Part shown: positions 3,353-64,000 of the stretch, in pieces | Numbering within the stretch: the first letter of the stretch is position 1 | How the letters are laid out: each line of letters starts with the position of its first letter | Assembly: GCF_036588685.1 (NCBI RefSeq) | Contig: NC_086377.1 | Span: 10,354,001-10,418,000, forward strand | Direction of reading: 5' to 3' | DNA: 64,000 nucleotides | From: Mytilus trossulus | Taxonomy: Eukaryota | Notes under the pieces: generated by a model | The model's database searches: none | The model's input: only the letters and a program-made list of their open reading frames with translations | Told to the model about the DNA's origin: nothing | Position numbers and translations under genes: made by a program

Positions 3353-3367
3353 ATGTTCATGTGGCGG
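3353..3367 (+). CDS. 15-nt exon encoding C-S-C-G-G (second Cys pair of putative Zn ribbon), upstream paralog
   Basis: ttttttctctcattgtAG|atgttcatgtggcgg|GTAAGTactgcagataaa; phase 2-2. Confidence 0.72.
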
Positions 3368-4481: not shown

Positions 4482-4509
4482 AACTGTGAGGTATATTAGA
4501 GAATTGTAA
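4482..4509 (+). CDS. Putative terminal coding exon (G)TVRYIREL* of upstream paralog
   Basis: gttttcAG|a ACT GTG AGG TAT ATT AGA GAA TTG TAA in phase 2; AATAAA at 4755-4760. An internal donor AG|GTATAT at 4491 (9-nt exon) is an alternative. Confidence 0.6.
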
Positions 4510-22665: not shown

Positions 22666-22671
22666 CAAATA
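22666..22671 (+). CDS. 6-nt microexon (CAAATA), second cassette
   Basis: tttctcttttttcAG|caaata|GTAAGTgttatataccaga. Confidence 0.6.
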
Positions 22672-28624: not shown

Positions 28625-28642
28625 CTGTTCTACCTGTGACGT
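28625..28642 (+). CDS. 18-nt exon encoding C-S-T-C-D-V (second Cys pair), second cassette
   Basis: tttttccatgttAG|c TGT TCT ACC TGT GAC GT|GTGAGT; phase 2-2; counterpart of 3353-3367. Confidence 0.68.
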
Positions 28643-39476: not shown

Positions 39477-40243
39477 ATGGCACAGGCAGCCTCTAAAACA
39501 TGTGAGATATGTATAAGTGCTCCAGGATCCCAATACTGTTTGGAGTGTGAACAAAACTTTTGTGAAAATTGTAAAACTTTTCATAGTAGGCAGAAGATAT
39601 CAAAAACTCACCAGTTCCAGTCTTCCTCTGATGTAATCCCGGAGGGTAAATCGAAATGTAAGGACCACAATGAAGACTTCAGTTTTGTATGCAAAACATG
39701 TGACGTAGTAGTGTGCAGTAGTTGTGTGACTGGCAGTCACACAGGGCATGCTTTTTCCAAGCTTCTGGACAGCATTAAACAGTTAAAGGAGAAGAACACA
39801 ACATACCTACGTATAAGAGTACAACAGTCAACACAAAACATGAAGCAGATAGAAAAAGGTATAAAGGAATTTGATGTCAAGGTGGAAGGAGTAGTCAAAG
39901 CTATTACAAAAGAAGGTACACAACTCAAGGCTATGGTTGATAAATGTGTTGCAGAGATGATTTCATCGGTCAATGATCAATCTAGGAGAGAAAAGGACAA
40001 ATTGACAAAGATCATGGCAGATACTAGAATGGATTTGAAGGCAGGAAGCAATTTAGACATGCAGATTGATGAACTCGACAAGATCAGAAACGATGGTAAT
40101 TTGTTACAGTCTTTACAGAAGCTTACAGATGACAATGCAAAGCTGACGATAAAGCCAATTCCCGAGTTTCCGAACATAAGGTATACTGCGAAGTCCGCAA
40201 CAGATAACGACGTTAAACAACTGTTTGGTAACTACATACTCAG
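39477..40243 (+). CDS. RING-less TRIM-like protein, coding exon 1 (B-box1, B-box2, coiled-coil)
   Basis: CEIC..CLEC..CENC..H..H and CKDH..CKTC..CSSC..HTGH followed by a helical heptad region; donor ctcAG|GTAATT in phase 2. Confidence 0.93.
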
Positions 40244-40475
40244 GTAATTCTACTAAAAATGACTGACAATTTTGTGGGCGTAATACATGCTTTAATATAA
40301 CCATAGTATCTAAATGAGACACGCTTTTTTTTTGCGAAATAAAAATTATGTTGTATTCTGAAATATAAACTTATGTCTTGAAATAATATGACAGACGAAG
40401 GAGTGATAATTCATGAAATACAAATATGCGTTCATTACACATCTATTGTTTAATATTATGGATTCAACATGTGAT

Positions 40476-42164
40476 GAAACCAAATTTCTTGGTTTACTTT
40501 TCGATAAAAAGTTAACCTTTCTACCCCATATCAAAATGTTAAAAGCGAGATGTTTAAAAGCTTTAGATATTTTAAAAGTTGTCGGCAGCACTGACTGGGG
40601 TGCTGATCGCAACATTTTACTTAATTTATATAGATCTCTTGTTAGATCGAAACTAGATTATGGCTCTATAGTGTATGGCTCTGCAAGGAAGTCCTACATA
40701 CAGATTCTCGATGCTGTGCATCACCAAGGTTTGCGTCTCTGTCTTGGCGCATTTAAAACCTCACCAGTTGAGAGTCTGTATGTAGAGGCTGATGAGCACT
40801 CACTCACTGACAGACGTTTGAAGCTTGGACTTCAATATGCTGTCAAACTAAAAGCCCATTCAGATAATCCTGCCTACAGCTGTGTTTTTAATCCGATTTA
40901 TGAAGATATTTTTGCAAAACATGAAAATAAAATTCCTCCGTTAGGTTTACGTTTAAAACCACATTTAGCTTCTTTTGATTTAAAATCTGTTGCTCAAGTT
41001 CAAACTTGCAAATGTCCTCCATGGGAACTTCCCAAACCAAAAATGATATTTGATCTCCGTGAACACAATAAAAATAAAACAAATCCTCTTTTAATTCAGC
41101 AACACTATGCTGAAATTAAAGCCGATTATCTAGATTTTTCAACTGTATATACTGATGGATCAAAAGATGGTGATAGAGTTGCATCTGCTGCTGTCTTCAG
41201 GGACAGAGCTGCAACCCTCCGTTTACCATCTGATGCATCCATCTTTACTGCTGAAGCAGAAGCAATAATTTTGGCTTTGAAATTTATTGCTTCTTCAGAT
41301 AAATCCAAATTTATTATATGTTCGGATTCACTTTCATGTTTACAAGCTATACGAAATACTAAAATTAAAAACCCAACAATCCTGAAAATTTTATATGTAA
41401 TGAGGAATTTAAAAATTCTTCTGAAAGAAATAATATTTTTATGGGTTCCGAGTCATGTTGGAATCCTTGGAAACACAGCTGTAGACCTTGAGGCAAAGAA
41501 TGCCCTGGGTGACCCTCTATCTAACTGTGATATACCATATACTGATTTTAAATCTAATATTAGAGAATATGTTTTTAATATATTGAAAAATAAATGGAGT
41601 AAAAAAGATGATAATAAATTGCATGAAATTAAACCTAGTTTAGGCAAACCTTTTGATAATATTATGTGCAGAAAAGATCAGTGTGTTATTACTAGATGTC
41701 GTATTGGTCATACTAGAATAACACACGAGTATCTTTTAAAAAATGAAGATGAACCACAATGTGTTCCTTGCAACTGCAAGTATACTATTAAACATGTTTT
41801 AATTAATTGTATTGACTTTGCTGATATTCGTAAGAAGCATTTCAATGTCAATAATATGTATGATTTATTTAATGATGTTCCATTTACAAATATTGTTGCT
41901 TTTTTAAAAGAAATTGGAATTTATTATAAAATATAAAAATGTTATTATATTTAAATCGATTTTAATTTTTATCACGTTATTTTACTGTTGATTTTTAATT
42001 GTATATACTCAATTTGCTTTAGTCAATAATTTTAGTATACTGAAGGACTTTTTGTCTTATTTTAAAATATGCTTTAAATTGTAAAAATATTCGAATTAGC
42101 TCTCGCCGCGATATAGCCTTTTTGTGCTAATGCGGCGTAAAGCAACCAACAATCAATCAATCAA
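40476..42164 (+). mobile_element. 5'-truncated I-group (Nimb/I-like) LINE, copy 1, in intron 1
   Basis: ORF with end of RT region, RNase H (YTDGSK..AEAEAI..SDSLS..WVPSHVGILGN..D) and CxxC..H..C knuckle; (TCAA)n tail; 12-bp TSD TCAACATGTGAT (40464-40475, 42165-42176). Confidence 0.95.
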
Positions 42165-42737
42165 TCAACATGTGATCCAGTAGATAAATGCAGGATCTAT
42201 GGCATTTTACATTTGAAGTTGTATTGATACATGTACGTTTACCTATCTCGACAATACGTAAACATATGTAGAAATGCAAAAATAAAATTGAGAATAGAAA
42301 TGGGGAATGTGTCAAAGAGACAACAACCCGACCAAATAAAAAAACAACAGCAGAAGGTCACCAACAGGTCTTCAATGTAGCGAATACTTGCTTCCAAACT
42401 AGTACAGATATAACTGTTTTTCTCGTTATTTAAATATGTTATTCTAATTGCGTGCATTTTATGTATTATTATAAAAGAAATAAAGACAAAAGAAGTATAC
42501 CGCTTTACAATAGGAATATATCGATTAAACTGAGAGAAAAATCCGAACAAAACTGAGGGAAACACACATTAACTACAAGTGGAAAGCAACAGAACAACAT
42601 TAACACTGTACTGCTACAAAAACAAACGCCAACATACAAAGAAAATTACTATTTGTTCACAACTGTCATACTCCTGACACTTGACAGAACATTTCATGAA
42701 AAAAAAATATAAAAAAAATCTGTTTATCTTTTATCAG

Positions 42738-42794
42738 TGAAATGCGTACACAACAAATCATGAACAAAGAAAGAGAATTGCCTTCATCCAAGAG
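42738..42794 (+). CDS. TRIM-like gene exon 2 (57 nt; EMRTQQIMNKERELPSSK)
   Basis: tttatcttttatcAG ... aagAG|GTAGGG; open and symmetric phase 2-2, continuing the exon 1 frame. Confidence 0.78.
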
Positions 42795-45321
42795 GTAGGG
42801 AAATATTTGTGTATATTAAACAGTTTTAAAGTTACATATTTGGCAATATAAACTTGTTATCAAATCTGTGAGTGAATTACACATTATTTTCGATAAATCA
42901 ATTAGAATGTCTCTCCTCTTTTTTCCACTACGTACGTTAGAACACACTGGCTCGAGCACGATTGCGTTTTAGTAAATAAATCATATGATATGCAAACGCA
43001 TACTAGTAGCATCAATTATGTTCAATAAAGTTAAGATTTTGTTGCATTTAATTTTCGTAAATGTACTGTTCGTTAAAATGTGCCTGCTTCTCAGGTTGAA
43101 ATATTTAAAACCTCTTTACACTTATAGAATTTCTCTATGGCTTATGTATCTCCTCTTTTTTCCACTACGTACGTTAGAACAAACTGGCTTGAGCACGATT
43201 GTAACTAAATAAATCATCTAATGATATGCAAACGCAAACTAGTATCATTAATTATTTTCAATAGTGTTTAAATGTTGTTGCATTTAATATTCGTTAAATG
43301 TAAATTGTCCCTGCTTGTCTAGTTGAAATATATAGAACCTCTTTAAACTTATACGATATAACCAAAATATAAAAGTCATTCATCACAATTATCTGGACTA
43401 TTGATGCACGTATAATCAAAAGACGAAATACTGTTTTACAACAACATAACTGTTTTGTTAAGTGTAGTTTGTCTTTTTGTAAATAGTCTTTGTATGTCAT
43501 ATCTTTTCTCCTATAGAAATGATCTCTTTTAATGTGGTGACTGAAAGCAGATTTTATTTTAATCTAATCTCCCCACCGAACACACATCTATATAATATAT
43601 CATTGGAAAGAGGAAATTGCGTACTATAATAATATGCCTGTCGTCAGGTACTGATATGGTCACATTTTTTTTATAAATTGAGGTCAAAGGTCATATGTAA
43701 AAATCTGTGAAAATTCGGGAGGGTTTCAATTTTGACATTTTTTCTTTTTTCTAAACTCTATCTAAACACACATGATACTGTTTTGGCTTTAATAATGTTT
43801 GTTATTAAAAAACTAAAACGATGTTTTATAAACAAAACTTCATAAATCAAGTTTTCAACCTATAAAATGTTTAGAGCACCTTAACCTTATAAAAGTTTTC
43901 AGTTTCAGGTAAAAATTAAGTGTCATGCAGGGCAGTACTTAAATATTTAAACTAACATATTGGGTGAGGTATCAAACCAAAGCAATAGAACTCTACAGTC
44001 AAATATTACCTCAAATTGAATTTTCGGATACTTCAGGTTTTTTTATCGACTACTCGTTTTTCACAATTATTACTGCTTCCATAGTAGTATCTGTTGTTGT
44101 GTTTTCTACGCTGGTTAATATCTATTACATTATAGGTTTTGTACCTATATCCCCTCTTTTTCCCTTTGCAACGTACCACAAACTTCAAAAGTATTCCATA
44201 TAAAAAAAAAACATGTAATATGCTTGCAAATAAAACAACTCTTAAAATAAGACCAAATGATACATAAATTAACAAATAAAGGTCCTGTACGGGCTTCAAC
44301 TATGAGTAAAATTCATACGACATAGTCTTCGATTCCTGAAATGAATAAATTGAAACAAAAGAAAAATATAACGGCCTGATTAATATACAAAATAAATGAG
44401 AAACAAACAAATATAGTATACAGAAACAAACACCAAACACTGCATAACCGTCGCGTGACTTGTAAAACACATAAAATGTGGCGGGATTTAACTTTTTTAA
44501 AGTCGCGCCAACACTCCCCTAACCTCGAGGAAGGGACTGTGGGTACATTTTGTACCAGTGAAACAAGCTTTATACCAAATCCACCGTTATCGCCATCATC
44601 TTTATTTTGATCAACCGTTACAAGACATGTTTTAATATTTCTACCAATTTCACTCATGGCCACAGTTCTGCACAAGAAAGGTTCTGGTCAAAGCAAACAC
44701 ATTATTTTGAGTTTTTCTTTACAAGTACCGATAGGGTACTACCATTATAAGAGCACTGATAAGAAAACAATTGACGTACATTTGAGTTGAGTTCGTTTTT
44801 ACGCCAAAAAATGGCGGCGCGACAACTTTGTAAGCCTTTGAAAAATCGCTCATAAATTACTATATATCATTTGTCAGGATATTTGTCTTTAAATTCATAA
44901 AATTAAGCAAATTAACATTGATGTAGTAAATGCCAATACTAAACTTTTATCATTTAGATAAAAGTTTTGGGATTCTCAAATCTGGATTCCCAATTTTTTC
45001 TCCGTGGGACAGATTTGCTCTTGTTATATGGAACGCGGGTTTTTCAATGACGTCATCATAACATCATAAAAAGTGCATAAAAGACTGAAGGAACCATTCT
45101 GTTTAATAATTGAAAAAACGTTTTGACGAAAATGATAGTTTAGTGGTTACAATAAATGAATTATGTTACGCGGGACAGCCTTAAAATCGTCGGTTTTTTT
45201 AAGGTGAAGCTTGTCGCATGCAGCAAAAAACATAGTTTCGGTGATTATTTTTTTCGTCTTTATTTTGAAATTCTTTAGTTTTAAAAATACGTACAATAGC
45301 AATGGATAGGATATCACAAAA

Positions 45322-46300
45322 TTATATAATTGGACTTGCATCTTGCCAACTACACCGCATTTCCAATAAGGTACGAACATCGCGCGTAACGTCATAGTAT
45401 ACATTTACGCAATTTTTATAGTGCCATTTCCAGAGAAAAGTATTGGCTGAATGCAGTTTCATCGAGTAACAATAAAATAAATTGCAATGAATACGAAGGC
45501 ATTGACCGAATTGAAGATGGAAAAGACAATTCATCCGAAGTTGGGTATTCTTCTGTAGAGTTTCGAAGTCTTTTCGAAGTATACTTGCAGCGGAATGATA
45601 TATATGTCCGTTATTTATGTCTTTTACAGTTGTCATTGAGATTTTGAGGTCAGTTTTCAATTGACTAGCAGTTGATATGGCATCTCAAATAGTTTTTTTG
45701 CTATTAAATATTATGTTATAGTTGCCTTGAACTTGTTGAAGATGTTTGACAACTGAATTTCTATAGAAATCAATGAGTTTAGACAGCATTTTACAAGTAG
45801 AATATTTAAAATAAGAATCAGCCGGAAGAAAAGATCTATATTTATCAAGTAACGGACGTGTCATGAGGAACGACCATTGAATCGTTCTCCATAGCCAAAC
45901 TAAAATGAGTAAAAGCAGTATCGAGATCCGAAATATCTGCTTCTACGGGTTTCGATTTGTTTTTGTTTTTTTTCGTTTTTAGCAAATATTTTGTAATACA
46001 ACCGTAATGACAGAGTGCTTGAAGTTTAAAAGATGGACGGGAAACTGTTCTCAACGTTAACCTTATCTGACACGAATAAAACATTCTTGATACGCTCATC
46101 TGATTTGAACTTCAGTTGTTTTTGATCTTACTAAAATGTTTTGTTGCAGCAAAATATACAAGCGCTCCAGTTGAACGCGTACAAATACCCGAAACTGAGG
46201 GACAACAGTCCGATAATTTTATGTCGTCATTAAATGACAGATAGAAGCTTCCTGACTCTAAAAGGGGGAACAAATATATTTACTTGTGTAACTTTTCTAA
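45322..46300 (-). mobile_element. Decayed coding remnant of a probable DNA transposon in intron 2
   Basis: Fragmented minus-strand peptides (CHYGCITKY; IYHSAASILRKD) resemble large DNA-transposon proteins; many stops; family not established. Confidence 0.3.
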
Positions 46301-47731
46301 CATGAACAACTATAAACTTCCTGCACAGAGTTCTTTAAATTAACAGCTTCCGCATGCAACATCTTGATGTTCACCTCATCCAATCTTTTATTCAAGTGCA
46401 GATTCAAAATCGACTTCCCTATACTAGTAAAATAATTTTTGGCATATTAAGCACTGCATAAAATTAAACGACTTTTGCCTTTTCTTTAGACTTATAATGG
46501 AGCAAGTTGGAACGAACTAAACATATCACGGAATATTTACTGAAACTATCCGTTAATTATTTTGATTTTACAATAAGTCTTTTTTGATGTTTTATAAGAA
46601 GAAATTATAGAATACAAACATATACAAACAAAGTATGTGGCATATATCAGTGCACTTTAATTGAAAACATGTGTATATAAAGCAAAGAAGGTAGTAATTT
46701 CATATTTCAGTTGAGATCAAATTATTGACTAATACACAATATGTGACGGAAGGCAAGTGATTGAATTCAATGTTGAAATTGAAGTTTTTTACTCCATTCT
46801 TTTCCATTGATTTCGTAACGTTTCTTTGATATTTTGGTTCCGAAATTGTTATCACTTACTAGTTTTATGAAATATTATATGCTTAAAATATTATGGGTTA
46901 AAGTTTATTACTACTATGAAGAAGAAACTAAAGTTTGTGTCTGAATATGCAATTAAAATTACCTCGATTTTAAATAGTCCAAACTTTGCAAATTTCATAG
47001 ATTAGAAGAAAATAAAATACTGAATAGAATACTCTGACATATAAAAATAGCTCCAGGAAAAACTATTTCAATTAAATGTAAGCAAACCTACACACTTTTT
47101 TTTATTTTGAAAAAGGGGGGTTGAAACTCTCAAATATACTACTAGTCCTTAAAACGACTTTTTAGAAAAGTGTGACCGTACGAAATTTTGAAGACAGGGC
47201 AAAAATTAAAAAAGACATATTTGTCTTTAAGTTAAGACAATTTTAAGCCGTGTTTTATTTGGGAGATTGAACTCGCGATCTAGACGACTTTTTACACTTC
47301 TGTCACCGCACTATTTGTGATATTGTCACCTCTTTTTACCATAAAAACTATTATTGATTCACAAAGTTATTCGCAATCGACTGTTAATAAACAGTTCAAC
47401 CACGCCAGCATTCACATTCACAATGAAGGGGTAAAAGATTTCAGCAGCCATATCTACTCTAATTAAGATAGTTCGTCATTTCATTCAGTTTGTAAGTGTC
47501 TGTAGGAAAGACGGGGAAATAGAGGGAAAAGCGTATGCAATCAGAAATAATTCTATAAGGATTGGAAAGATAAAATATATATGACCTCAAATTGAATATA
47601 TTGTTTTGGTTGATATCATCTAATTTTGTTTAAGGAACGACATACACCAATACGACCATTACAGCTAAATAAAAGTCGAACTTAATTATAAGTTCTTGTC
47701 AAACATTACGTATACTACGTAACGACAACAA

Positions 47732-47946
47732 ATGGTGAACTGTGATACTCTTTGTGGGTAAACAGCTTCTGTTCTACACTGAACCATAGAAAACATCTCT
47801 GATGACATGGTGAACTGTGATACTCTTTGTGGGTAAACAGCTTCTACACTGAACCATAGGAAACATCTCTGATGACATGGTGAACTGTGATACTCTTTGT
47901 GGGTAAACAGCTTCTGTTCTACACTGAACCATAGGAAACATCTCTG
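47732..47946 (+). repeat. Three tandem ~70-75-bp repeats
   Basis: atggtgaactgtgatactctttgtgggtaaacagcttct... x3. Confidence 0.9.
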
Positions 47947-48205
47947 AAGTAAAGCAATATATCTTTCTAATAAAAAAAATGTATCTCTGTCAAGGTGTAA
48001 GTTGATTTTTTTTTTTTTATAAATTATCATTTCAATTCATTCGAGATTGTCTAATTTGGTTTATGACTCTAGTATATATTTCAAATGCTTTTATGATATT
48101 TTTGCACTGTTTATGTGTGTATCAGTTAGTAATAGCTTGTTGGATTTTAATATTATCTTAGAATAGAGTAAATTTTAAGTCAATCAATTGTGTTGCTTAT
48201 TATAG

Positions 48206-48271
48206 TGATTACAAACAGGATGTGATACCAAAGGAGCAAGGAAAATGCCTGTACAGATGTGTCAAGTGTCG
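48206..48271 (+). CDS. TRIM-like gene exon 3 (66 nt; DYKQDVIPKEQGKCLYRCVKC, first Cys pair)
   Basis: tgttgcttattatAG ... tgtCG|GTAAGT; open, phase 2-2. Confidence 0.82.
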
Positions 48272-48906
48272 GTAAGTTTATTATTATTGTTTCTATGGAC
48301 ATGACACAGAATTGTACATCTATATCATGTGTCGTATCAAATGTATAATTTCAAAGTGTCAATGAAGTGCAAAATACATGGGTCTTTTATCTCGAAAAAT
48401 GCAACAGGTGTCATGTGTAATTGGCTTGCGCCACACAGATGTTTGGACTGTTTAAGAAATCAATAAGAAACATCGATGAACAAACCAATAAGAGTGATAT
48501 AGAGCAGCATTATATCTGTTAACTTGTAAATAATTTACACAAATGTAATGAGCAACATAGTTTCGTCTTCGTCGGCAGTGATGTAAATGGATGTATAATA
48601 ATAATACTAGACGCCATATTTTGGTACTCATATTTAATCACTCATAGGGCGCATTTGGTGGTTTGATACTAAATCATTCACGGGTATTTTGCATGATTTG
48701 CATGATTTGCATAATATGGAGAATATAAAAAAAAAATGTGGTATGATTGCCAATGAGACAACTATCCACAAAAGACCTAAAAGAAATTCATTTTTAATCA
48801 GTTAAGATGTGGTCTAGAGCTCGCATGCATGTCAGTAACTGTCTTTGTTGATATACGCATCAATGCCATTTTGCATAGGTTTTTTTAGTTACCTTTTCTG
48901 ACATCA

Positions 48907-50546: not shown

Positions 50547-50656
50547 CATCAGACTCTTTTAAACTGAGTCAAGCGCGCGAGGTTTGTTTAGACTTAAAAC
50601 TAGATTCAACACACCAATGGTTATAAAAATGTTGGGTATGTTTCTCATATTTAAAA

Positions 50657-53574
50657 TGTAGGCAAGCCCGACGAACATCCTGGAAAAAATTTGTCTCGGG
50701 GATTACATCTCGCACTCCGATGACAAAAGTTTGGAATATGGTAAATAAAATAAAAGGTAAAAATTCTAAAGCCACTGTAAAACATTTGAAAGACGGCAAT
50801 ACTTTATTAACATCTGAAAAGGATATTGCCAACAAACTTGGTGAAACTTTTGCAAAGTCTTCTTCTTGTAACAACTACAGGGAAGACTTTAAAAAAGTTA
50901 AAAAACAAAAAGAAAAAATTAAATTAAACTTTAAATCAAAAAATGGTGAAAATTATAATAAACTATTTTCTCTTGAAGAACTTAAAACATCTCTGTCAAA
51001 AGCCCATGATACAGCTTGTGGGCCTGATAATATTCACTACCAACTCTTAAAACACTTGCCAGATTCCTCGCTAGAAGCTCTCTTGCAGCTCATGAATAAC
51101 ATCTGGGAATCTGGTGATTTACCATCAATCTGGAAGCTTGCAACCGTCGTGCCTATTCCAAAACCAAGTAAAGATCATACGGATCCTATTAATTATCGAC
51201 CAATTGCTCTTACCAGTTGTGTCTGTAAAACACTCGAACGGATGGTCAATGATCGACTTGTTTGGTTCCTGGAATCCAATGGGCTATTAGCCAATATCCA
51301 GTGTGGATTCCGACAGGGTCGCAGTACTCTTGATCATCTTGTTCGATTCGAATCATTTGTCCGTAATGGTTTTGCGAAAAATGAGCATGTGGTGTCGGTC
51401 TTTTTCGACCTTGAGAAGGCCTATGATACTGCATGGAAATATGGTATTTTAAAAGATTTATTTGATATGGGGTTGAAAGGCAATATGCCTAATTTTATTT
51501 CTAATTTTCTCTCTAACAGACAATTTAATGTTAGAGTTTATCGACCATGTCTGATCTGTATGATCAAGAGATGGGTGTCCCTCAGGGCAGTATTTTATCT
51601 GTAACATTATTTAGTCTTAAAATTAACAGCCTTGTTGAAGTTTTAAAAAGTAATATTGAAGGTTCATTGTACGTTGATGATTTTTTAATATGTTACAGAG
51701 GCAAAAATATGAATAACATAGAAAGACAATTACAACTATGTCTTGGAAGAATTGAAAAATGGGCCTCGGAAAATGGTTTTAAATTTTCCACGTCAAAAAC
51801 GGTCGGGATGCATTTTTGTAACAAAAGAAAATTGCATCTTGATCCAGAACTAACTTTGTACGGCAACCCAATTAAAATGGTTGATGAAACCAAATTTCTT
51901 GGTTTACTTTTCGATAAAAAGTTAACCTTTCTACCCCATATCAAAATGTTAAAAGCGAGATGTTTAAAAGCTTTAGATATTTTAAAAGTTGTCGGCAGCA
52001 CTGACTGGGGTGCTGATCGCAACATTTTACTTAATTTGTATAGATCTCTTGTTAGATCGAAACTAGATTATGGCTCTATAGTGTATGGCTCTGCAAGGAA
52101 GTCCTACATACAGATTCTCGATGCTGTGCATCACCAAGGTTTGCGTCTCTGTCTTGGCGCATTTAAAACCTCACCAGTTGAGAGTCTGTATGTAGAGGCT
52201 GATGAGCACTCACTCACTGACAGACGTTTGAAGCTTGGACTTCAATATGCTGTCAAACTAAAAGCCCATTCAGATAATCCTGCCTAAAGCTGTGTTTTTA
52301 ATCCGATTTATGAAGATATTTTTGCAAAACATGAAAATAAAATTCCTCCTTTAGGTTTACGTTTAAAACCACATTTAGCTTCTTTTGATTTAAAATCTGT
52401 TGCTCAAGTTCAAACTTGCAAATGTCCTCCATGGGAACTTCCCAAACCAAAAATGATATTTGATCTCCGTGAACACAATAAAAATAAAACAAATCCTCTT
52501 TTAATTCAGCAACACTATGCTGAAATTAAAGCCGATTATCTAGATTTTTCAACTGTATATACTGATGGATCAAAAGATGGTGATAGAGTTGCATCTGCTG
52601 CTGTCTTCAGGGACAGAGCTGCAACCCTCCGTTTACCATCTGATGCGTCCATCTTTACTGCTGAAGCAGAAGCAATAATTTTGGCTTTGAAATTTATTGC
52701 TTCTTCAGATAAATCCAAATTTATTATATGTTCGGATTCACTTTCATGTTTACAAGCTATACGAAATACTAAAATTAAAAACCCAACAATCCTGAAAATT
52801 TTATATGTAATGAGGAATTTAAAAATTCTTCTGAAAGAAATAATATTTTTATGGGTTCCGAGTCATGTTGGAATCCTTGGAAACACAGCTGTAGACCTTG
52901 AGGCAAAGAATGCCCTGGGTTACCCTCTATCTAACTGTGATATACCATATACTGATTTTAAATCTAATATTAGAGAATATGTTTTTAATATATTGAAAAA
53001 TAAATGGAGTAAAAAAGATGATAATAAATTGCATGAAATTAAACCTAGTTTAGGCAAACCTTTTGATAATATTATGTGCAGAAAAGATCAGTGTGTTATT
53101 ACTAGATGTCGTATTGGTCATACTAGAATAACACACGAGTATCTTTTAAAAAATGAAGATGAACCACAATGTGTTCCTTGCAACTGCAAGTATACTATTA
53201 AACATGTTTTAATTAATTGTATTGACTTTGCTGATATTCGTAAGAAGCATTTCAATGTCAATAATATGTATGATTTATTTAATGATGTTCCATTTACAAA
53301 TATTGTTGCTTTTTTAAAAGAAATTGGAATTTATTATAAAATATAAAAATGTTATTATATTTAAATCGATTTTAATTTTTATCACGTTATTTTACTGTTG
53401 ATTTTTATTTGTATATACTCAATTTGCTTTAGTCAATAATTTTAGTATATTGAAGGACTTTTTGTCTTATTTTAAAATATGCTTTAAATTGTAAAAATAT
53501 TCGAATTAGCTCTCGCCGCGATATAGCCTTTTTGTGCTAATGCGGCGTAAAGCAACCAACAATCAATCAATCAA
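50657..53574 (+). mobile_element. 5'-truncated I-group LINE, copy 2, in intron 3 (frameshift plus premature stop)
   Basis: RT motifs (YRPIALTS, QCGFR, FFDLEKAYD, GVPQGS, YVDD), RNase H, knuckle; frameshift near 51540; TAA at 52285-52287; (TCAA)n tail; 12-bp TSD TCATATTTAAAA (50645-50656, 53575-53586). Confidence 0.95.
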
Positions 53575-53960
53575 TCATATTTAAAACGCTGAAACGACAT
53601 AATGTAGATGACGTAAAGCTCTAAACGCAGCACAAATTTGTGAATTTAGACGATTTACGTTGGCATTAAATTTCAGACCCTTTTATTTGCTGAGTCAATT
53701 ATCACTTTTGAAACATTAATTGTCAGATGCATAAAGGTGTATGCCGCCAATGTTATCATGCTAATGTAATATTCATCCATAACGATTTACATGGTCACAA
53801 TACAATTCAACAATAGGTGGTAAAATAAAGTAAACTTACCTAAATTTATAGAAAATATTAGTATTGCTTCGGAAATGTTTTCTGGATAAACAGCAACTTA
53901 TCTATCAGTAATTTTGTTTAGAATGTGTAACTGATACCAATGATCTGTTTCATCTTTCAG

Positions 53961-53981
53961 AAAGGAAATGAGAACTGATAT
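53961..53981 (+). CDS. TRIM-like gene exon 4 (21 nt; (R)KEMRTD)
   Basis: tctgtttcatctttcAG|a AAG GAA ATG AGA ACT GAT AT|GTAAGT; phase 2-2. Confidence 0.8.
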
Positions 53982-54988
53982 GTAAGTATGATCTACGTCT
54001 ATTGTAAAAGACAAATATTTAAAGTTCGCAATTCGTCAAATTGTTCCAAAAAATAAGCTTACAATAGATTGTGACACGACGATGGCTAGGTCTAAGTGTT
54101 CTTTGTTTTTTTATTAAACGTGTTGTTTGGCTTTTTTTAATTGTTTCTTTGCTATGGTGTATGTTTTTTGGGTTTTTATGATTTTCGAATGCCCATTGTA
54201 TTTAGTTTAAAACATATTTCGAGAAAATAAACATTTAACGTATATTATACTGTAATCGAAAACAAGTCCCATTTTAAGCCATTGTATCTTTTATTTTGCT
54301 CACCCGTGCATATTGTTGTCAATGTATTCGAATCATATGATACTGTAATACGATTAATAGGTTCAGCTAGTTATAACACAAAGTGTAATCCATCATTTTC
54401 TACATAAGTAAATGCTTGTACAAAAACCGGGGCGAAAGATACCAGAGTGACGGTCAAACTTATATATCTATACTAAACTGGGAACCACATGGGTTAGAAA
54501 TATAAAAAGAAACAAGAACATCAAAAAAAAAAACAATCATTGTTATACTATAGAGATACAAAGAAACACATATCAAACAAAACAATCATGTTGATGTACT
54601 TACGTTGTGAGATTAATTGCACATATATAAATACCAGGTTTTACAAATTGAAAATTCATGAAAAAAAGATTAATGCATAATGGTGTCTCGTTGATAAAGA
54701 CACTCTGCGACGTTTACTATGTGTCCAGTTTATGTGAACTGTGGTTAAAAGTTTTTTCTATCTAGTTACCATATCGGATAGGTAAATCAAATGTTGCTCG
54801 GACAAAACACTTAGTAAAAATATAGAAGTGTCATGTCGAATGTTTGTTCATTTGTCACATTCCTATTTATACAGCACGTAAACATTGCAGGGTTTGCACC
54901 GCACACTCACCATGTTACTGCATTACTTGTTCAATTACATTTAGTCTATTTATCAATTTTTTTATAATTAATTATTTGATATTTTCAG

Positions 54989-54991
54989 ATT
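54989..54991 (+). CDS. 3-nt microexon ATT
   Basis: attttcAG|att|GTAAGTgtcaagtagaaaacagataagtat. Confidence 0.75.
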
Positions 54992-55321
54992 GTAAGTGTC
55001 AAGTAGAAAACAGATAAGTATAGCGTCTTATTGTATATGTTGGTTTGTTTGTTTGTGTTGGTGTATACAGATATTTATATAAATTAGTTAGGTAGCTTTA
55101 CAATTTGAAATAATCTCAATCACTATGAGGAAAAATGAGAAAACAAATTAAACTCATAGTAATGACTTTACTATTGAATTATCTGACAGAACACTCGATA
55201 TTCTCAAAATGTTGTACTTTTATTGCATTACTTTTTCAATTAAATCCAATGACGATTTTTTGTTTTTAACTGTATGATTTGCTGTTAAAAAAATTGATTA
55301 TTTTGACTGGTTTTTGTTGAG

Positions 55322-55324
55322 CGT
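55322..55324 (+). pseudogene. Decayed CGT microexon
   Basis: ttgttGAG|cgt|GTAACT: acceptor CAG>GAG and donor +5 G>C relative to intact copies. Confidence 0.55.
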
Positions 55325-56258
55325 GTAACTGTCAAGTAACAATCAGAAAGGTATAATTATATATACTGTAGTTCATTATACAAAGAGAGTAATACAAAGA
55401 TGTTAAGTAAAACAATAAACATGTCATGATTGTGATGTATGGTAGCACCCGTTATGTCTACAAAAGAGGCGGAAGATACCAAGAGACATCTAAACGCATA
55501 ACGTTATAATTTAGTACCCAGAACGACAAAAAGACAATCAAATGAATACAAAATACAACAATCAGGATTGCGTTGTTTTCTATATGTATCTTCATCTTCA
55601 TTACATAACGTGTGATTAATTCAGTAATAAAAGTAAAACAATACACATGTCATTAACGTGATATATGTGAGACTCGCGGGTCGTCTACAAATGAGGCGAA
55701 CGATACCAAAAAGACATTCAAATGCATTGGTCGAATATAAACTGACACCGCCATGGCTAAATCCTAGTGCTACAAAAACACCAACAACAGTCGTCAAACA
55801 AATTGTGTGATTTCATGCACTGATTAATACATTTACCGTCATTGGAAATGCTGAAAGCCGAAATGTATAAACCTGTATAGTTAACAAACCTGTTGTCAGT
55901 TTGTTTTAGATTTATGAGTTTGACTGTCCCTTTGGTATCTTTCGTCTCTCCATTGAAGTATATGTCCTTGGAAAAAACACATCAATATGATTATATCGAC
56001 CTGACGTCCATTTCTTTTTTAGATTTCTTAACAAATTATAAATGTACAAAGCGCCAAATCACACAACTTTTACATTGCAATAACTGGCATCATTATATCT
56101 TATTGACTATACTTTTCAAAAATATGACAAAAACAAACTGTCATCTACAAATGTTCTCCTATCACATTACTACTTATTCCAATAATTATATTGGAGATAA
56201 CTTAATTCTTTTCTAAATGGTATGCTGTATTTAATGGTTATTAATTTGATTGTTTCAG

Positions 56259-56264
56259 ATCGAT
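56259..56264 (+). CDS. 6-nt microexon ATCGAT
   Basis: tgtttcAG|atcgat|GTAAGTgtcaagtagcatacagataagta. Confidence 0.75.
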
Positions 56265-56815
56265 GTAAGTGTCAAGTAGCATACAGATAAGTAATTTACA
56301 CTTATATAATATGCACTTTAAAATGTGATAACATGTATATAACGGTGTTAGAAGAGTTGCAAAGTTAAACAATAAACATACCATTGTAAGAGATAAATTT
56401 TCTCAGTACCGCTGTTCGAAAGTCGTATATCGAATGAGAGAAAAAAAGTAGGTGTCACGTAGAAAACAGATAAGTATAGCGTATAAAGATATATGTAGGT
56501 CATTATATAAAGATATCTGTACCAATTAGTTAAGTAATAGTGAACATTAGATAAACCTTTAAAATGATGTATGGTAGACGTGAGCATAGCTCTAAAATTT
56601 GAAATCATCAACATAACTATTAGGCAAGATGAGAAAACAGAATCTAACTCATAGTAATGACTTTACTTTTGAATTATCTGATAGAACACTCAATAGTCTC
56701 GAAATGATGTACTTTTATTGCATTGCTTTTTTAATTAAATCCAATAACGATTTTTGCTTTTGCCTGAATGATTTGCTGTTCACTATAATGATTAATTTGA
56801 CTGATTTTTGTTCAG

Positions 56816-56818
56816 CGT
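56816..56818 (+). CDS. 3-nt microexon CGT
   Basis: tttttgttcAG|cgt|GTAAGTgtcaagtaacaaacagaaatgtat. Confidence 0.7.
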
Positions 56819-57325
56819 GTAAGTGTCAAGTAACAAACAGAAATGTATAATTATATAAACTGTAGTTCATTATATAAAGAGAGTAATACAAATATGTTAA
56901 GTAAAACAATGAGCATGCGTATAATATGATGTATGATAGCCCTGCGTTATGTTTACAAGAGAGGCGGGAGATACCAAGAGACATTCAAACGCTTAACGTT
57001 ATAATTTAGTACGACGAAAAGACAATCAAATGAATACAAAAAAACAAACAATAATATGATTATATCGACCTGACGTCACTTTTGTTTAGGTTTCTTAACA
57101 AATTATAAATGTACAAAGCGCCAAATCACACAACTTTTACATTGCAATAACTGGCATCATTATATCTTATTGACTATACTTTTCAAAAATATGACAAAAA
57201 CAAACTGTCATCTACAAATTTTCTCCTATCACATTACTATTTATTCCTATAATTATATTGGAGACAACTTAATTCTTTTCTGAATGGTATGCTGTATTTA
57301 ATGGTTATTTATTTGATTGTTTCAG

Positions 57326-57328
57326 GCG
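57326..57328 (+). CDS. 3-nt microexon GCG
   Basis: tgtttcAG|gcg|GTAAGTgtcaagtagcatacagataagta. Confidence 0.72.
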
Positions 57329-57879
57329 GTAAGTGTCAAGTAGCATACAGATAAGTAATTTACACTTATATAATATGCACTTTAAAATGTAATAATATGT
57401 ATATAAAGGTGTTAGAAGAGTTGCAAAGTTAAACAATAAACATGCCATTGTGAGAGATAAATTTTCTCAGTACCGCTGTTCGAAAATCGTATATCGAACG
57501 AGAGAAAACAAGTAGGTGTCACGTAGAAAACAGATAAGTATAGCGTATAAAGATATATGTAGGTCATTATATAAAGATATCTGTACCAATTAGTTAAGTA
57601 ATAGTGAACATTAGATAAACCTTTAAAATGATGTATGGTAGACGTGAGCATAGCTCTAAAATTTGAAATCATCAACATAACTATTAGGCAAGATGAGAAA
57701 ACAGAATCTAACTCATAGTAATGACTTTACTTTTGAATTATCTGATAGAACACTCAATAGTCTCGAAATGATGTACTTTTATTGCATTGCTTTTTTAATT
57801 AAATCCAATAACGATTTTTGCTTTTGCCTGAATGATTTGCTGTTCACTATAATGATTAATTTGACTGATTTTTGTTCAG

Positions 57880-57882
57880 CGT
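57880..57882 (+). CDS. 3-nt microexon CGT
   Basis: tttttgttcAG|cgt|GTAAGTgtcaagtaac. Confidence 0.7.
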
Positions 57883-58389
57883 GTAAGTGTCAAGTAACAA
57901 ACAGAAATGTATAATTATATAAACTGTAGTTCATTATATAAAGAGAGTAATACAAATATGTTAAGTAAAACAATGAGCATGCGTATAATATGATGTATGA
58001 TAGCCCTGCGTTATGTTTACAAGAGAGGCGGGAGATACCAAGAGACATTCAAACGCTTAACGTTATAATTTAGTACGACGAAAAGACAATCAAATGAATA
58101 CAAAAAAACAAACAATAATATGATTATATCGACCTGACGTCACTTTTGTTTAGGTTTCTTAACAAATTATAAATGTACAAAGCGCCAAATCACACAACTT
58201 TTACATTGCAATAACTGGCATCATTATATCTTATTGACTATACTTTTCAAAAATATGACAAAAACAAACTGTCATCTACAAATTTTCTCCTATCACATTA
58301 CTATTTATTCCTATAATTATATTGGAGACAACTTAATTCTTTTCTGAATGGTATGCTGTATTTAATGGTTATTTATTTGATTGTTTCAG

Positions 58390-58392
58390 GCG
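58390..58392 (+). CDS. 3-nt microexon GCG
   Basis: tgtttcAG|gcg|GTAAGTgtcaagtagc. Confidence 0.72.
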
Positions 58393-58943
58393 GTAAGTGT
58401 CAAGTAGCATACAGATAAGTAATTTACACTTATATAATATGCACTTTAAAATGTAATAATATGTATATAAAGGTGTTAGAAGAGTTGCAAAGTTAAACAA
58501 TAAACATGCCATTGTGAGAGATAAATTTTCTCAGTACCGCTGTTCGAAAATCGTATATCGAACGAGAGAAAACAAGTAGGTGTCACGTAGAAAACAGATA
58601 AGTATAGCGTATAAAGATATATGTAGGTCATTATATAAAGATATCTGTACCAATTAGTTAAGTAATAGTGAACATTAGATAAACCATTAAAATGATGTAT
58701 GGTAGACGTGAGCATAGCTCTAAAATTTGAAATCATCAACCTAACTATTAGGCAAGATGAGAAAACAGAATCTAACTCATAGTAATGACTTTACTTTTGA
58801 ATTATCTGACAGAACACTCAATAGTCTCGAAATGATGTACTTTTATTGCATTGCTTTTTTAATTAAATCCAATAACGATTTTTGCTTTTGCCTGAATGAT
58901 TTGCTGTTCACTATAATGATTAATTTGACTGATTTTTGTTCAG

Positions 58944-58946
58944 CGT
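58944..58946 (+). CDS. 3-nt microexon CGT
   Basis: tttttgttcAG|cgt|GTAAGTgtcaagtaac. Confidence 0.7.
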
Positions 58947-59456
58947 GTAAGTGTCAAGTAACAAACAGAAATGTATAATTATATATACTGTAGTTCATTA
59001 TATAAAGAGAGTAATACAAATATGTTAAGTAAAACAATGAGCATGCGTATAATATGATGTATGATAGCCGTGCGTTATGTTTACAAGAGAGGCGGGAGAT
59101 ACCAAGAGACATTCAAACGCTTAACGTTATAATTTAGTACGACGAAAAGACAATCAAATGAATACAAAAAAAACAAACAATAATATGATTATATCGACCT
59201 GACGTCATTTTTATTTGGTTTCTTAACAAATTATAAATGTGCAAAGCGCCAAATCACACAACTGCTACTTTTCAATACAGTAACTGGCATCATTATATTT
59301 TATTGAATATACTTTTCAAAAATATGACAAAAACAAACTGTCATCTACAAGTTTTCTCCTATCACGTTACAATTTATTCAATTAATGTATTGAAGATAAC
59401 TTAATTCGTTGTTAATGGTATGCTGTATTATATGGTTATTTATTTGATTATTTCAG

Positions 59457-59459
59457 TTG
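59457..59459 (+). CDS. 3-nt microexon TTG
   Basis: tatttcAG|ttg|GTAAGTttcaagtagcaaacagataagtat. Confidence 0.72.
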
Positions 59460-59994
59460 GTAAGTTTCAAGTAGCAAACAGATAAGTATAACATGCACTT
59501 CAAAATGAATTAATTTGAATATAATGGTATTAGTAGAGTTGCAAAGTTAAACAAAGAACATAACATTTAAGTGAGAAATATTCTCAATACCGCTGTTCGA
59601 AAGTCGTTTATCGAATGAGAGAAAACAAGTGAGTGTCAAGTAGAAAACATACAGGTATAGCGTATTATTGTGTATGTAGGTCATTATATAAAGGTATTTG
59701 TACCAATTAGTTAAGTACTAGTGAACATTAAATAGCCCATTAAAATGATGTATGGAAGACGCGATCATAGCTTTAAAATGTGAAATCATCAAAATAACTA
59801 TGAGGCAAGATGAGAAAACAAAATAAAACTCATACTAATGACTACTATTGAATTATCTGACAGAAGACTCGATAGTCTCAAAGTATTGTACTTTTATTGA
59901 ATTACTTTTTTAATATAATCCAAAGACGATCTTTGCTTTTGCCTGAATGATTTGCTGTTCACTATAATGATTAATTTGACTGATTTTTGTTCAG

Positions 59995-59997
59995 CGT
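59995..59997 (+). CDS. 3-nt microexon CGT
   Basis: tttttgttcAG|cgt|GTAAGTgtcaaggaacaaacagaa. Confidence 0.65.
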
Positions 59998-60858
59998 GTA
60001 AGTGTCAAGGAACAAACAGAAAAATATAATTATATATACTGTAGCTCATTATATAAAGAGAGTAATACAAGTATGTGAAGTTAAACAATAAGCCTGCTTA
60101 TAATATGATATATGATAGCCGTGCGGTGTGTCTACAAAAGAATCAGAAGATACCATGAGACATTCAAATGCATAACGTAATTGTACCAAGAACGACAAAA
60201 ATACAATCAAATGATTACAAAATACAACAATCAGGATTGTGTTGTTTTCTATATATCTACATTACATAAAGTGTTATAAGTGAAGTAAAGTTAAACAATA
60301 AACATACCATAAATATAATATATGTGAGACTCGTTCCGTCTAATAAAATGGCGAAAGATATCAAAGAGAGATTCAACAGCATTGGTCGGATATAAACTTG
60401 CACCGCTATGGCTAAATCCTAGTGAGACATACAAATAAACAACAGTTTATAAAACAAAACGTAATCTGATGTTATTTCCTGTCTTCTAGATTAATCTTCA
60501 TTGAAAATACAAAATCAAAAATGGGTAAAACTTATGACATATACTAACCAAAACTGTTGAAGTTATTTGGCATCATTATTTAATTTAAATTGAATATATG
60601 ATTGTCCTTTTAAATTACCGATTCTTGATAAGTCTTCACCAGATAGTGACGTTCAAAGACATGGTATCCTGCTCAGCCCTGTCATAGAATTAATTGTCTC
60701 CTTTGTATTAGTCAATCAGGAGTATAATAGAAGAAACTGTCATTTAACAAAATGTTTTTTTTATATTTTTATTACGTATTCAACTAATTCCATTAAAGTT
60801 GGTTAATTCATTGCAGAATTGTATGCTGTAATTTATAATTATTATTATTTGTTTACAG

Positions 60859-60861
60859 CTT
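60859..60861 (+). CDS. 3-nt microexon CTT
   Basis: tttgtttacAG|ctt|GTAAGTtttaagtagaaaacagataagtat. Confidence 0.75.
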
Positions 60862-62064
60862 GTAAGTTTTAAGTAGAAAACAGATAAGTATAGCGTACAT
60901 TTACATAGACAATTTATAATGTAAGGCTTTTGATGCAATGGTGGTGGTAACATAGTTAAGTAAAACAATAATCCCACAACTTACATGACGTATCTCAGAT
61001 GCACGCTCCATCTTTAAAGAGGAGGAAGATAATAGAGAGACATTCAAAATCATTAGTAAAATGTAAACTAAACAAATACCATGGCAAAAATATAAAGAGA
61101 CAAACAACAGTAAAAAAAAACCCCAAAAGACAAGGTAATTTTAGAGACGATGAAAGCCAATACAGTTTTAAATAAAAATAGAGAACATACACATAACTGG
61201 TTGAACTATCACTAGGACAACTTTTTTTGAGGATGTTAGTTAAGAGTCTAGGGTTAACGTTTGTTACATATCCGATAATTTGTCAAACCTTCATAGGATT
61301 GTCTTGAAAACTTTGGCAGAAGATATTTATGATTCAGAAATAAGGTTTTTAAAATATATGTTCATTTGCAGTCTTTTTCTTATAGATGGTTTTGAATTAA
61401 TTTAGTTTTACTTGCAATATTTTTAAACCTGCATTAATTTTTATGAAACTTGGGCTTTATTAATACTGTATAATATCGTTTTGTATACAATGTGAAATAT
61501 CTGATAAATCCATAAATGAACTCATCATAGATAGTTATTAAAACTTTGCTTATCAGATAGTCTTTGTTGTTAGTGTTTTATCGTAAATAATCCAATTCTA
61601 AGGTTTTTTTTCTCGCCAATTAATATATTACAGAGTGACGTAATTGATAAAAGTAAGAACTCGTTTGTATTGGTTTTTTCTAATTTGATTGTTATATAAT
61701 TAACAACTGGATACCATAGAATAAAAAAACATACAGAAGTATTTTGTTATCATGATTGTTATAATTTCATAATATATAATCAATGAGGTTTCAATATCCA
61801 TTTACAATTATTATGGGAGAAAAATATTCATTTTTATCATTTAATTTGCTTTTTATTTGTATATTTTTACTTTTTTGTGATAGCTCTCACATTTAGGAAA
61901 CTACAGTATCTTCTAAATATGATTAACATTTCCAGACAAAATGCTGAACTTAATATGCACAAGTAAAACGTTGTATCTGATGTTTTTAGATGAGTATTTT
62001 CCCTTTCGTTGTTCTCTCAAACTATTCATTCGATCTTAATTGAATGTATATTTCTTTTTTTCAG

Positions 62065-62070
62065 GGGCAT
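62065..62070 (+). CDS. 6-nt microexon GGGCAT
   Basis: tttctttttttcAG|gggcat|GTAAGTaccaaccatataagtat. Confidence 0.7.
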
Positions 62071-62118
62071 GTAAGTACCAACCATATAAGTATGTTGTGA
62101 TAAGTTTAAACAAAATAA

Positions 62119-64000
62119 AAAATAAAACAGCATGTGATATTGAAAATTGCATCTGATATTTTAGTAAATGGGAAAATATATTAAAAAAAAGTTCGTCCCT
62201 CTTTTATCCTTTAGTTTATGGTATAAGTGTATAGTGTACGTACACACATTCATGGTACTGTTTTGTTCTAAAATGATACAACCCATTTTAAGGAGCCACG
62301 TTATATATTATATGAGAATTGATATGGCATTTTGATGAAGCAACATTTTTTTACATTATTTAAAACGTTATGTTATACAGTAAATCTTGCATCTTGTGTT
62401 TCATTTAGGTACTTTATATAGTATGTTATTTTAATTCACAATTGTCGATTCGTACTTATTTATCTTTGATTATAACTACCCTACGTCAACTTGTTTTAGG
62501 ATGAAAACACCAAAGTGTCTTTCGAAAGTCTTGGTGTATAAAAACAAAAATCACATAAATTATGCAATTCATAATAGAAGTTGTTTGATGTAATGTTGTT
62601 ATTAAAATAGCTAGGCAATACAATACACATACCATTTAAATAATGTCACACAGACGTGCATAACGACTACAAAAGAGTCGGAAGATTTAGAGTATCGTTA
62701 AAAATTGTAAAACCAGAAATGTTTTAAGCCAATGACATATGATAACCGGAACAGTTGAAATATTAGACCATAAAAAGCATAAGTGAAACAAGTTTACTCA
62801 ACCTCAGTTCAACTTAACTTTTGTGTGGTGCAACCTTAGTTCTCAAATGATTTCTAAATCTATAAAGCGACACGTTTAATTCATACACATACTGTTTATC
62901 ACATTCCAATGTTTGCCATGCTTGATTTATATACTAATTCAATAATGAGACTTAAAAATAATCTACTATCACAACTACCTATGGTATTCTTATATTGTCG
63001 TTGTTATCTCTCTTTGCTAAATTGTATGCTGTTTTCTGTGGTTATATTTTTATAAGTTGTCCCTCAAGTTAGTGTCAAGTTAGGCAAACACATAGGTATG
63101 GACATTAGTAATTTATAATATAAGGTTTTGTTAAAATGGTAGTAGTCGACTATTAGATTAATAAAAAAAATCATATCAACTTAATGTTGTATCTCAGACA
63201 GGTTCGTCTACAAGGAGGCAATGCCATGACAAACAGCAGTATACACAAAAACAAAATCAGCATTTTGAGTCATGCGTTATAGCGGAGCGAAATAAATCAG
63301 ACATTTTCAGTTTGACTGTCTGGTACCTTTCAGCCCTCTTTCATAGATTATACTGCATAAGAGATACTGAAAGCAAGGATAGTGAAAGCCAAAAATTATA
63401 AAAACAAATGTATTTGAAGAACTACATTAACATATCAACATATATAAAAATGGTTAAATCAACTCAAAGTCAACGTTATTCGTTTTTGAATAATAATTCA
63501 ATATTATGCTGTATTCAGTGATTATTTATTTATGTTTTCAGCAAGTAAGTGTCAAGTAGCAAACAGATAAGTATAGAAAACAATTATATATGCAATTTAT
63601 AATATAACGATAGTTATACAATGACGTCAGTAAAGCAGTAAAGTTAAACAATAAACACGTGTACTAGTACCATTTTATGAAAAGAAATATTTATATAAGA
63701 CATGATAAGATATTCGAGACAGAATTTTTAAAGCTGAGACGAATGTTTGTTTATGTGTACAGCCCGTGTTTTGTATACATATGTTGAAAAGAATGTCGGC
63801 AATTCTATACGTTTTGCATTTCCAAAATTATTCTGTCTTTCCAAAAAAGCATAACACTTTAAAAATTCAAAACGCCCAAAGCGCTTTTTGGGTTAAAGTA
63901 ACGTGCACTTTTACGAAGCGGATCAAGTCAGACATAATTTGTTCAGATTTTTTGCCACATTACAATGATTACCATAAGCATCATTGAAACAAAACACATA
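62119..64000 (+). repeat. Segmental duplication, paralogous to 1-2136
   Basis: Direct match to the window start. Confidence 0.95.
63542..63544 (+). CDS. 3-nt microexon CAA
   Basis: tgttttcAG|caa|GTAAGTgtcaagtagcaaacagataagtat; paralog of 1440-1442. Confidence 0.75.

Follow-up and report, generated by a model that had tools for sequence, protein, structure and literature searches.

Can a stretch of protein be spelled out by exons of a single codon each, and if so, are such exons spliced in as a fixed chain or chosen freely from one transcript to the next? The question is raised by a 64,000-nucleotide stretch of Mytilus trossulus DNA (chromosome piece C5:10354001-10418000, referred to here as the window), which carries on its plus strand a TRIM-like gene whose first four exons are followed by an array of candidate exons only 3 or 6 nucleotides long. 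The initial annotation had read this array as a set of microexons that are skipped independently of one another. We find that such units are genuine coding exons in the gene family to which this copy belongs, and the evidence favours constitutive chains, with diversity held in the germline among paralogues. Taken whole, a reading that combines a chain of coding 3- and 6-nucleotide exons, a dedicated splicing mechanism and germline diversity of the encoded loop appears to us probable, if short of secure.

Microexons and their use as codons in the gene family

The exons upstream of the array have the lengths and the phase first noted for them (767, 57, 66 and 21 nucleotides), with AG/GT borders present and phase 2 at every end:

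39477-40243, plus strand: exon 1, 767 nucleotides, an open reading frame with two B-boxes and a coiled coil but without a RING
42738-42794, plus strand: exon 2, 57 nucleotides, phase 2 to 2, AG/GT borders
48206-48271, plus strand: exon 3, 66 nucleotides, encoding YRCVKC, the first CxxC knuckle; AG/GT borders
53961-53981, plus strand: exon 4, 21 nucleotides, encoding KEMRTD; its donor has none of the downstream pseudo-donor sites described below

RefSeq proteins 99% identical to exon 1 of this copy were found, and homologues of the following exons are used by RefSeq models of paralogues: exon 2 (57 nucleotides) by P0019, P0025, P0004, P0003 and P0005, exon 3 (66 nucleotides) by P0019, P0025 and P0004, and exon 4 (21 nucleotides) by P0015, P0019, P0004 and P0003. 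Downstream of exon 4, between 54989 and 63544, lie 12 units, each made up of a polypyrimidine-CAG acceptor, 3 or 6 nucleotides, and GTAAGT. All are present as first listed, but the four CGT units among them turn out to form a separate class that goes unused in the RefSeq models of paralogues:

54989-54991, plus strand: ATT, type A; varies more among paralogues than any other position, its type being included in all mapped models
56259-56264, plus strand: ATCGAT, type B; 6 nucleotides here against 3 in paralogues, an in-frame change of +3
56816-56818, plus strand: CGT, type C; splice signals intact, no (C)AGATAAGTA pseudo-donor
57326-57328, plus strand: GCG, type B, microexon
57880-57882, plus strand: CGT, type C; copy from a 1064-bp tandem duplication
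58390-58392, plus strand: GCG, type B; tandem duplicate of the unit at 57326
58944-58946, plus strand: CGT, type C
59457-59459, plus strand: TTG, type B', microexon
59995-59997, plus strand: CGT, type C
60859-60861, plus strand: CTT, type D; a type included twice in P0025 and skipped once in P0005
62065-62070, plus strand: GGGCAT, type E; the identical unit is used in P0015
63542-63544, plus strand: CAA, type F; followed by TAGACA, a 15-nucleotide CxC exon and the last exon, all beyond the window

The end parts of the gene beyond the window were identified with the 3' end of an upstream paralogue as template:

L001:297-302: TAGACA unit, same gene, after the CAA unit
L001:1393-1407: CxC exon, 15 nucleotides, same gene
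L001:2595-2622: last exon with the stop, same gene

With these parts in place the gene is intact from exon 1 to the stop in every exon, splice site and frame. That full inclusion of the array reads open is borne out by translation, which continues beyond the window to the stop: with all 13 units the protein has 333 residues, and with the CGT units left out it is likewise open, has 329 residues and ends in ..YRCVKCRKEMRTD-ILSMRRCLGINRQ-CICGG-YMGITKGQ. Units of 9 nucleotides or fewer supply about 45 of the 990 coding nucleotides. The array is also strand-specific, since microexon candidates of at most 9 nucleotides number 16 on the plus strand of the window and 0 on the minus strand, and a 29-nucleotide motif following the donor occurs 14 times in the window as compared to 0 times in 100 shuffles, far more than chance would give. 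One example of this post-donor module is the following:

54992-55021, plus strand: GTAAGTGTCAAGTAG..ACAGATAAGTA, a true donor followed after about 22 nucleotides by a donor-like site whose cleavable G is replaced by A; diversity per site 0.02, compared with 0.04-0.15 for distal intron

Alignment of family proteins to their own loci, using a spliced mapper that required exons of at least 3 nucleotides and realistic splice signals, indicates how such units are used. Six RefSeq paralogue proteins (P0015, P0019, P0025, P0004, P0003 and P0005) match ordered chains of motif-flanked microexons exactly. In P0015 the chain runs [767][21] ACG CTG GGGCAT CTG CGG TTATCG [15][28], and in P0019 it runs [782][57][66][21] GTT GCG GCG TTG GGAATT GGAATG [15].., while P0025, P0004, P0003 and P0005 contain eight, five, six and nine microexon units, respectively. 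Chains of 3-nucleotide exons are hardly something that an ab initio gene finder would make up, which suggests that these models have transcript support. The 3- and 6-nucleotide units encode a variable loop before the CxC exon, as had been proposed, and they are genuine coding exons in this family.

The lengths of the units obey a strict rule. Among nine arrays that were read, 83 of 83 intact units measure 3 nucleotides (60 units), 6 (22) or 9 (one), so that the frame is kept, as had been claimed from the window by itself. A genome-wide pattern (acceptor, N nucleotides, GTAAGT, 8-18 nucleotides, CAGATAAGT) returned 186 matches for N = 3-9, with 0 for N = 0-2, 0 for N = 4-5 and 0 for every reversed-pattern control; among the matches listed (100 of the 186), all have exons of 3, 6 or 9 nucleotides. 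A lone 3-nucleotide unit (TCT; G000:C2:88418063-88418100) with the same layout of acceptor, donor and pseudo-donor was located 10 kb downstream of a B-box paralogue with 42% identity (C2:88408097), and this pairing suggests that the design is older than the cluster on C5. A conserved 7-nucleotide candidate, AG|TATTTAT|GTGAGT, was also seen about 340 nucleotides after each CGG unit at C5 loci (e.g., L009 8643128 and L016 9913247); it is frame-breaking and is used in no RefSeq model.

These findings bear on a reading in which the units are non-coding intronic repeats, or ratchet points of recursive splicing, whose 3 nucleotides are not kept in the mRNA. The units do belong to a duplicated repeat of about 0.35-1 kb that has relic copies, and an AG close to a GTAAGT resembles a ratchet point; however, the six RefSeq proteins can be mapped exactly only if the triplets serve as codons, all intact units follow the 3/6/9 length rule, and the repeat is restricted to one gene cluster and to the gene strand. 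We therefore hold a non-coding role to be highly improbable. A dispersed transposon or satellite was ruled out on the distribution of the post-donor motif, which is confined to a single 2.5-Mb cluster and to the strand of the genes.

Two classes of unit and a candidate splicing mechanism

Units that are competent by sequence combine a strong acceptor, a GTAAGT donor and, 16-23 nucleotides downstream, the donor-like sequence (C)AGATAAGTA, which we refer to as the pseudo-donor. Apart from an A where the cleavable G should be (AT for GT), this second site matches U1 almost perfectly. The type C units depart from this arrangement: all 16 have CGT as their exon and keep a perfect AG and GTAAGT, but they carry AGAAATGTA where used units carry AGATAAGTA, and they read ..ACAAACAGAAATGTA downstream where other units read ..CAAACAGATAAGTA. 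Inclusion follows the same division. Across the six mapped RefSeq models, 39 of 40 pseudo-donor units are included (36 with the strict motif and three with a near-variant) and one is skipped, as compared to 0 of 9 CGT units; for the strict motif the association of pseudo-donor and inclusion gives a Fisher p of 1e-6, a value to be read with the relatedness of the genes in mind, which makes the counts non-independent.

Sequence diversity separates the two classes as well. In the used types A, B, B', F, G and E, exon diversity amounts to 0.13-0.67 per site and distal intron diversity to 0.03-0.15, with values for positions +1 to +30 after the donor of 0.02 in types A, B, B' and F and 0.13-0.19 in types G and E; the 3-nucleotide exon of pseudo-donor units is 2-10 times more variable than nearby intron. 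The CGT units show a diversity of 0 in the exon, 0.08 at +1 to +30 and 0.08-0.12 in the distal intron, the module varying just as intron does. Type D, known from five copies, is CTT in all of them, with zero exon variation. The contrast between the classes indicates that a functional unit consists of a frozen splice module and a fast-changing triplet. In six further copies of the CGT type the donor is weakened, to GTAACT or GTACCT, and in two of the six the acceptor AG is gone as well. One of the six lies in the window at 55322-55324; the others occupy the same position in five other paralogues, one of which has lost the acceptor too. The CGT units are probably neutral relics that are normally skipped, those of the window being dead or rarely used.

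A different combination occurs in units at L016/L017 (C5:9914591 and 9917732) and L020 (10137897 and 10141052), which possess a perfect donor and a pseudo-donor and have no polypyrimidine acceptor (..acataag|TCG|gtaagt). These units are unused in P0005, which indicates that an acceptor is needed besides the downstream module.

How, then, might exons this short be recognized? With an acceptor and a donor 3 nucleotides apart, the complexes that bind the two sites cannot both be in place at once. We propose that the pseudo-donor lets U1 define each unit as an 'exon' of about 25 nucleotides, at a workable distance from the acceptor. The upstream intron would be spliced out first, after which the proximal GTAAGT, 3 nucleotides past the acceptor, would act as the donor of the next step. 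Splicing would thus proceed stepwise from 5' to 3' in a manner akin to recursive splicing, leaving 3 nucleotides behind at each step, and the chain following exons 1-4 would contribute roughly one loop residue per unit between the CxxC and CxC knuckles. CGT units, having no second site, would be relics that are normally passed over and would form a natural control. In one unit, folding predicts that the polypyrimidine tract pairs with the pseudo-donor, but this stem is no better than in shuffled sequence.

An alternative is that the units behave as cassette microexons skipped independently of each other, so that one gene would yield hundreds to thousands of loop variants in the manner of Dscam or the schistosome MEG genes, with the CGT units optional. 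Every unit is a multiple of 3, and 8064 of the 8192 possible subsets read open and specify 4264 distinct proteins from this gene; moreover, RefSeq models vary in which of the larger symmetric exons 2, 3 and 4 they omit, though these are intact in the DNA, and 16 CGT units retain a perfect AG and GTAAGT. The RefSeq evidence, which comprises one model per gene, nevertheless takes 39 of the 40 competent units and none of the nine CGT units. The competent units all have near-consensus splice sites, like constitutive exons, the CGT units are unconstrained and have six further copies with weakened or lost signals, and no transcript-derived protein with an alternative loop emerged from a protein search restricted to the tail. 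The figure of up to 2^12 inclusion patterns that had been put forward for this gene is not supported; the pattern of use looks like that of a fixed chain with dead units interspersed, and we consider independent skipping unlikely. Nor does the analysis support the immune role that had been suggested for the product. Somewhat more doubtful still is a variant in which each competent unit, and rarely a CGT unit too, is included with its own probability or regulation, giving hundreds of zinc-ribbon loop variants per gene. Were inclusion regulated in this way, the 51-gene cluster would provide a very large, Dscam-like somatic repertoire built from single-codon exons and a dedicated pseudo-donor module.

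Cysteine tail, paralogue cluster and state of this copy

The gene was first described as TRIM-like, and the domain content agrees, though no RING is present. A Pfam scan of paralogues places zf-B_box in two stretches (E = 1e-10 to 1e-15), with TRIM_CC below its cutoff; in six family members the scan finds no RING, the protein beginning with the first B-box, and yields no significant match in the tail to PRY-SPRY, NHL or any other known domain at the C-terminus. The microexon units encode a loop between the CxxC knuckle of exon 3 and the CxC knuckle, and together these make up a tail of about 35 residues that, from its sequence, looks zinc-ribbon-like. The family pattern is CxxC, then 8-16 residues, then CxC or CxxC (YRCxKC ... 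CSCGG in C5 paralogues, CxxC ... CxxC in C11 paralogues). Such an arrangement of cysteines is characteristic of zinc ribbons and paired knuckles, and the tail may well bind zinc. The loops of paralogues vary in length and content, as in LLRRWELEC, IRWGICGYR, KWGFCWYR and KNWRWYMENCGYR; one RefSeq paralogue tail reads ..KEERTD-KWGFCWYR-CSCGG... For P0019, an AlphaFold2 model built on a 40-sequence alignment has a helix at 97-205, a disordered linker before the tail, and three short strands in the tail itself, at a predicted local confidence (pLDDT) of 65-74. The search restricted to the tail returned only four RefSeq models and no open reading frames derived from transcripts.

At the P0003 locus (L021, C5:10281888), the 66-nucleotide CxxC exon bears an in-frame TAG and is left out of the model, and no CxC exon was found within the 20 kb read. 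This copy probably has a tail without cysteine knuckles, or is decaying.

The 29-nucleotide post-donor motif has 147 copies in the 1.3-Gb genome, nearly all of them between 8.14 and 10.6 Mb on C5 and 136 on the gene strand. Exon-1 homologues, about 51 in number, occupy the same interval, with more distant homologues on C11 (about 50% identity) and C14 (about 35%). The genes form a tandem family whose repeating units span 30-60 kb and contain one array apiece. Loop diversity would on this basis be mainly germline, residing in some 51 paralogues whose arrays differ in how many units they have and in the triplets these contain; tandem duplication of a unit would give rise to new loop letters. The window contains one such event, and a decayed CGT unit as well:

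56259-59459, plus strand: 1064-bp module, duplicated in tandem and consisting of a B unit, an acceptor-less relic and a CGT unit
55322-55324, plus strand: decayed CGT unit, GAG for CAG and GTAACT for GTAAGT

Copies of the 1064-bp module are 99.7% identical, and each adds one codon to the loop. Within a unit type, changes of length keep the frame, from GCG to ATCGAT in this gene and from CTG to CTGGTACAT in the upstream paralogue. At 56448-56476, 57512-57540, 58576-58604, 59629 and 63068 lie relic units that have kept the post-donor module and lost the acceptor; they show GTAGGT or GTTAGT in place of GTAAGT, and some retain the AGATAAGTA site. Relics of this kind imply that units die as well as arise.

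Whether this particular copy is expressed is a separate matter. Its own RefSeq model (P0149) covers exon 1 only and reaches 256 residues by reading through into the intron, which could mean that the copy is silent or decaying and that its array is an intact-looking relic, other family members being the expressed ones. Such a state would fit the retrotransposon fragments present in introns 1 and 3, the unusually long loop produced when the 1064-bp module was triplicated very recently, and the fragmentary neighbours (e.g., exon-1 pieces at C5:10341151 and C5:10342840). Exons, splice sites and frame are nonetheless all intact up to the stop, and many paralogues with intact arrays likewise have models truncated at exon 1, 2, 3 or 4, as expected if 3-nucleotide exons cannot be placed. 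We judge silence of this copy to be on the unlikely side, and favour its expression with constitutive inclusion of the competent units. Truncated family models, which read into the next intron after exon 1, 2, 3 or 4, recur in five Mytilus species; aligners are probably unable to place 3-nucleotide exons, and the true C-termini of the family are by this account widely mis-annotated. The expectation that standard annotation would miss the array holds for this copy, whose model stops at exon 1, and fails for at least six paralogues, which are annotated through their microexon chains.

Several points weigh against constitutive chains with germline diversity. The Fisher counts derive from related paralogues and hence are not independent, and the omission of the stop-carrying exon from the P0003 model could reflect model building guided by open reading frames. 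We infer inclusion in this copy, and the lack of isoforms, from DNA and RefSeq models, and the RefSeq model of the copy itself ends with exon 1. RNA folds of five units are no better than those of shuffled sequences (z from -1.2 to +1.1). The tail has no significant Pfam match, its best being zinc_ribbon_6 at E = 0.06 in a distant paralogue.

Other features of the window lie outside the array. Its first 4.5 kb are the tail of an upstream paralogue, whose end exons are the same ones used in RefSeq P0015 and P0025 and whose 15-nucleotide exon encodes C-S-C-G-G:

1440-4509, plus strand: upstream paralogue 3' end, comprising CGG (1440-1442), TTATCG (2918-2923), the CxC exon (3353-3367) and the last exon (4482-4509)

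Between the two paralogues lies a second, headless 3' cassette, with a 6-nucleotide unit (CAAATA, 22666-22671) whose post-donor module has decayed and an 18-nucleotide exon (28625-28642) that in phase 2 encodes C-S-T-C-D, a CxxC knuckle like those of the C11 paralogue tails; the cassette may be what is left of an older gene end. One non-LTR (long terminal repeat) retrotransposon with reverse transcriptase and RNase H open reading frames is present twice (40413-41936 and 50720-53346), in introns 1 and 3 and in the orientation of the gene, the first copy retaining an open reading frame of 507 residues; both copies share a CAATCAATCAATCAATCA tail at their ends (42150-42170 and 53560-53577). A 70-bp tandem repeat of 2.9 copies occupies 47732-47947 in intron 2, just 5' of exon 3.

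Comparison with known systems

The family resembles TRIM/RBCC proteins in having two B-boxes followed by a coiled coil and in forming a large, tandemly expanded family; it differs in lacking RING, PRY-SPRY and NHL domains, with a cysteine-knuckle tail of about 35 residues instead. Literature searches turned up no article on microexons in bivalves or on 3-nucleotide exons arranged in arrays. The chains are present in public RefSeq models of some paralogues, yet they appear to be undescribed.

The closest likeness in gene architecture is to the schistosome MEG genes, which contain arrays of symmetric exons, mostly of 6-81 bp with a mode of 15 bp (PMC10526429). Short symmetric exons, long introns, variable protein segments and resistance to automatic annotation are common to both (PMC10526429). 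There is, however, no sequence relationship between the two, and whereas MEG exons make up most of a secreted protein, the mussel units are mostly 3 nucleotides long and encode only a loop of about 10-15 residues in an otherwise ordinary, apparently intracellular B-box/coiled-coil protein whose N-terminus is a B-box rather than a signal peptide. Alternative exon use is documented for MEG genes; the mussel array is known from DNA and RefSeq models.

Single conserved 3-nucleotide microexons have been described in cytohesin-1, Drosophila homothorax and MAP4K5. Each adds one residue between canonical splice sites, as a mussel unit does, but these exons are isolated, whereas the mussel genes place up to about ten in a row, share a duplicated intronic module and together hold at least 186 units in a single gene cluster. 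Since acceptor and donor complexes cannot coexist 3 nucleotides apart, some ten consecutive exons of this length strain ideas of exon definition. The family thereby offers at least 186 natural test cases for the recognition of the shortest exons, all with one conserved intronic module and with the CGT units as a built-in negative control. It also illustrates how a protein loop can evolve: with each duplication of a splice unit that is complete in itself the loop gains a residue, and the triplet within the unit turns over far more quickly than the sequence around it.

The proposed mechanism comes nearest to the RS-exon (recursive-splicing exon) model (PMC6224609), in which an acceptor stands beside a donor, as it does in the mussel module of acceptor, proximal donor and distal donor-like site. 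Classical recursive sites retain 0 nucleotides, however, whereas the mussel units leave 3-9 nucleotides that appear as codons in RefSeq models, and their distal site is uncleavable.

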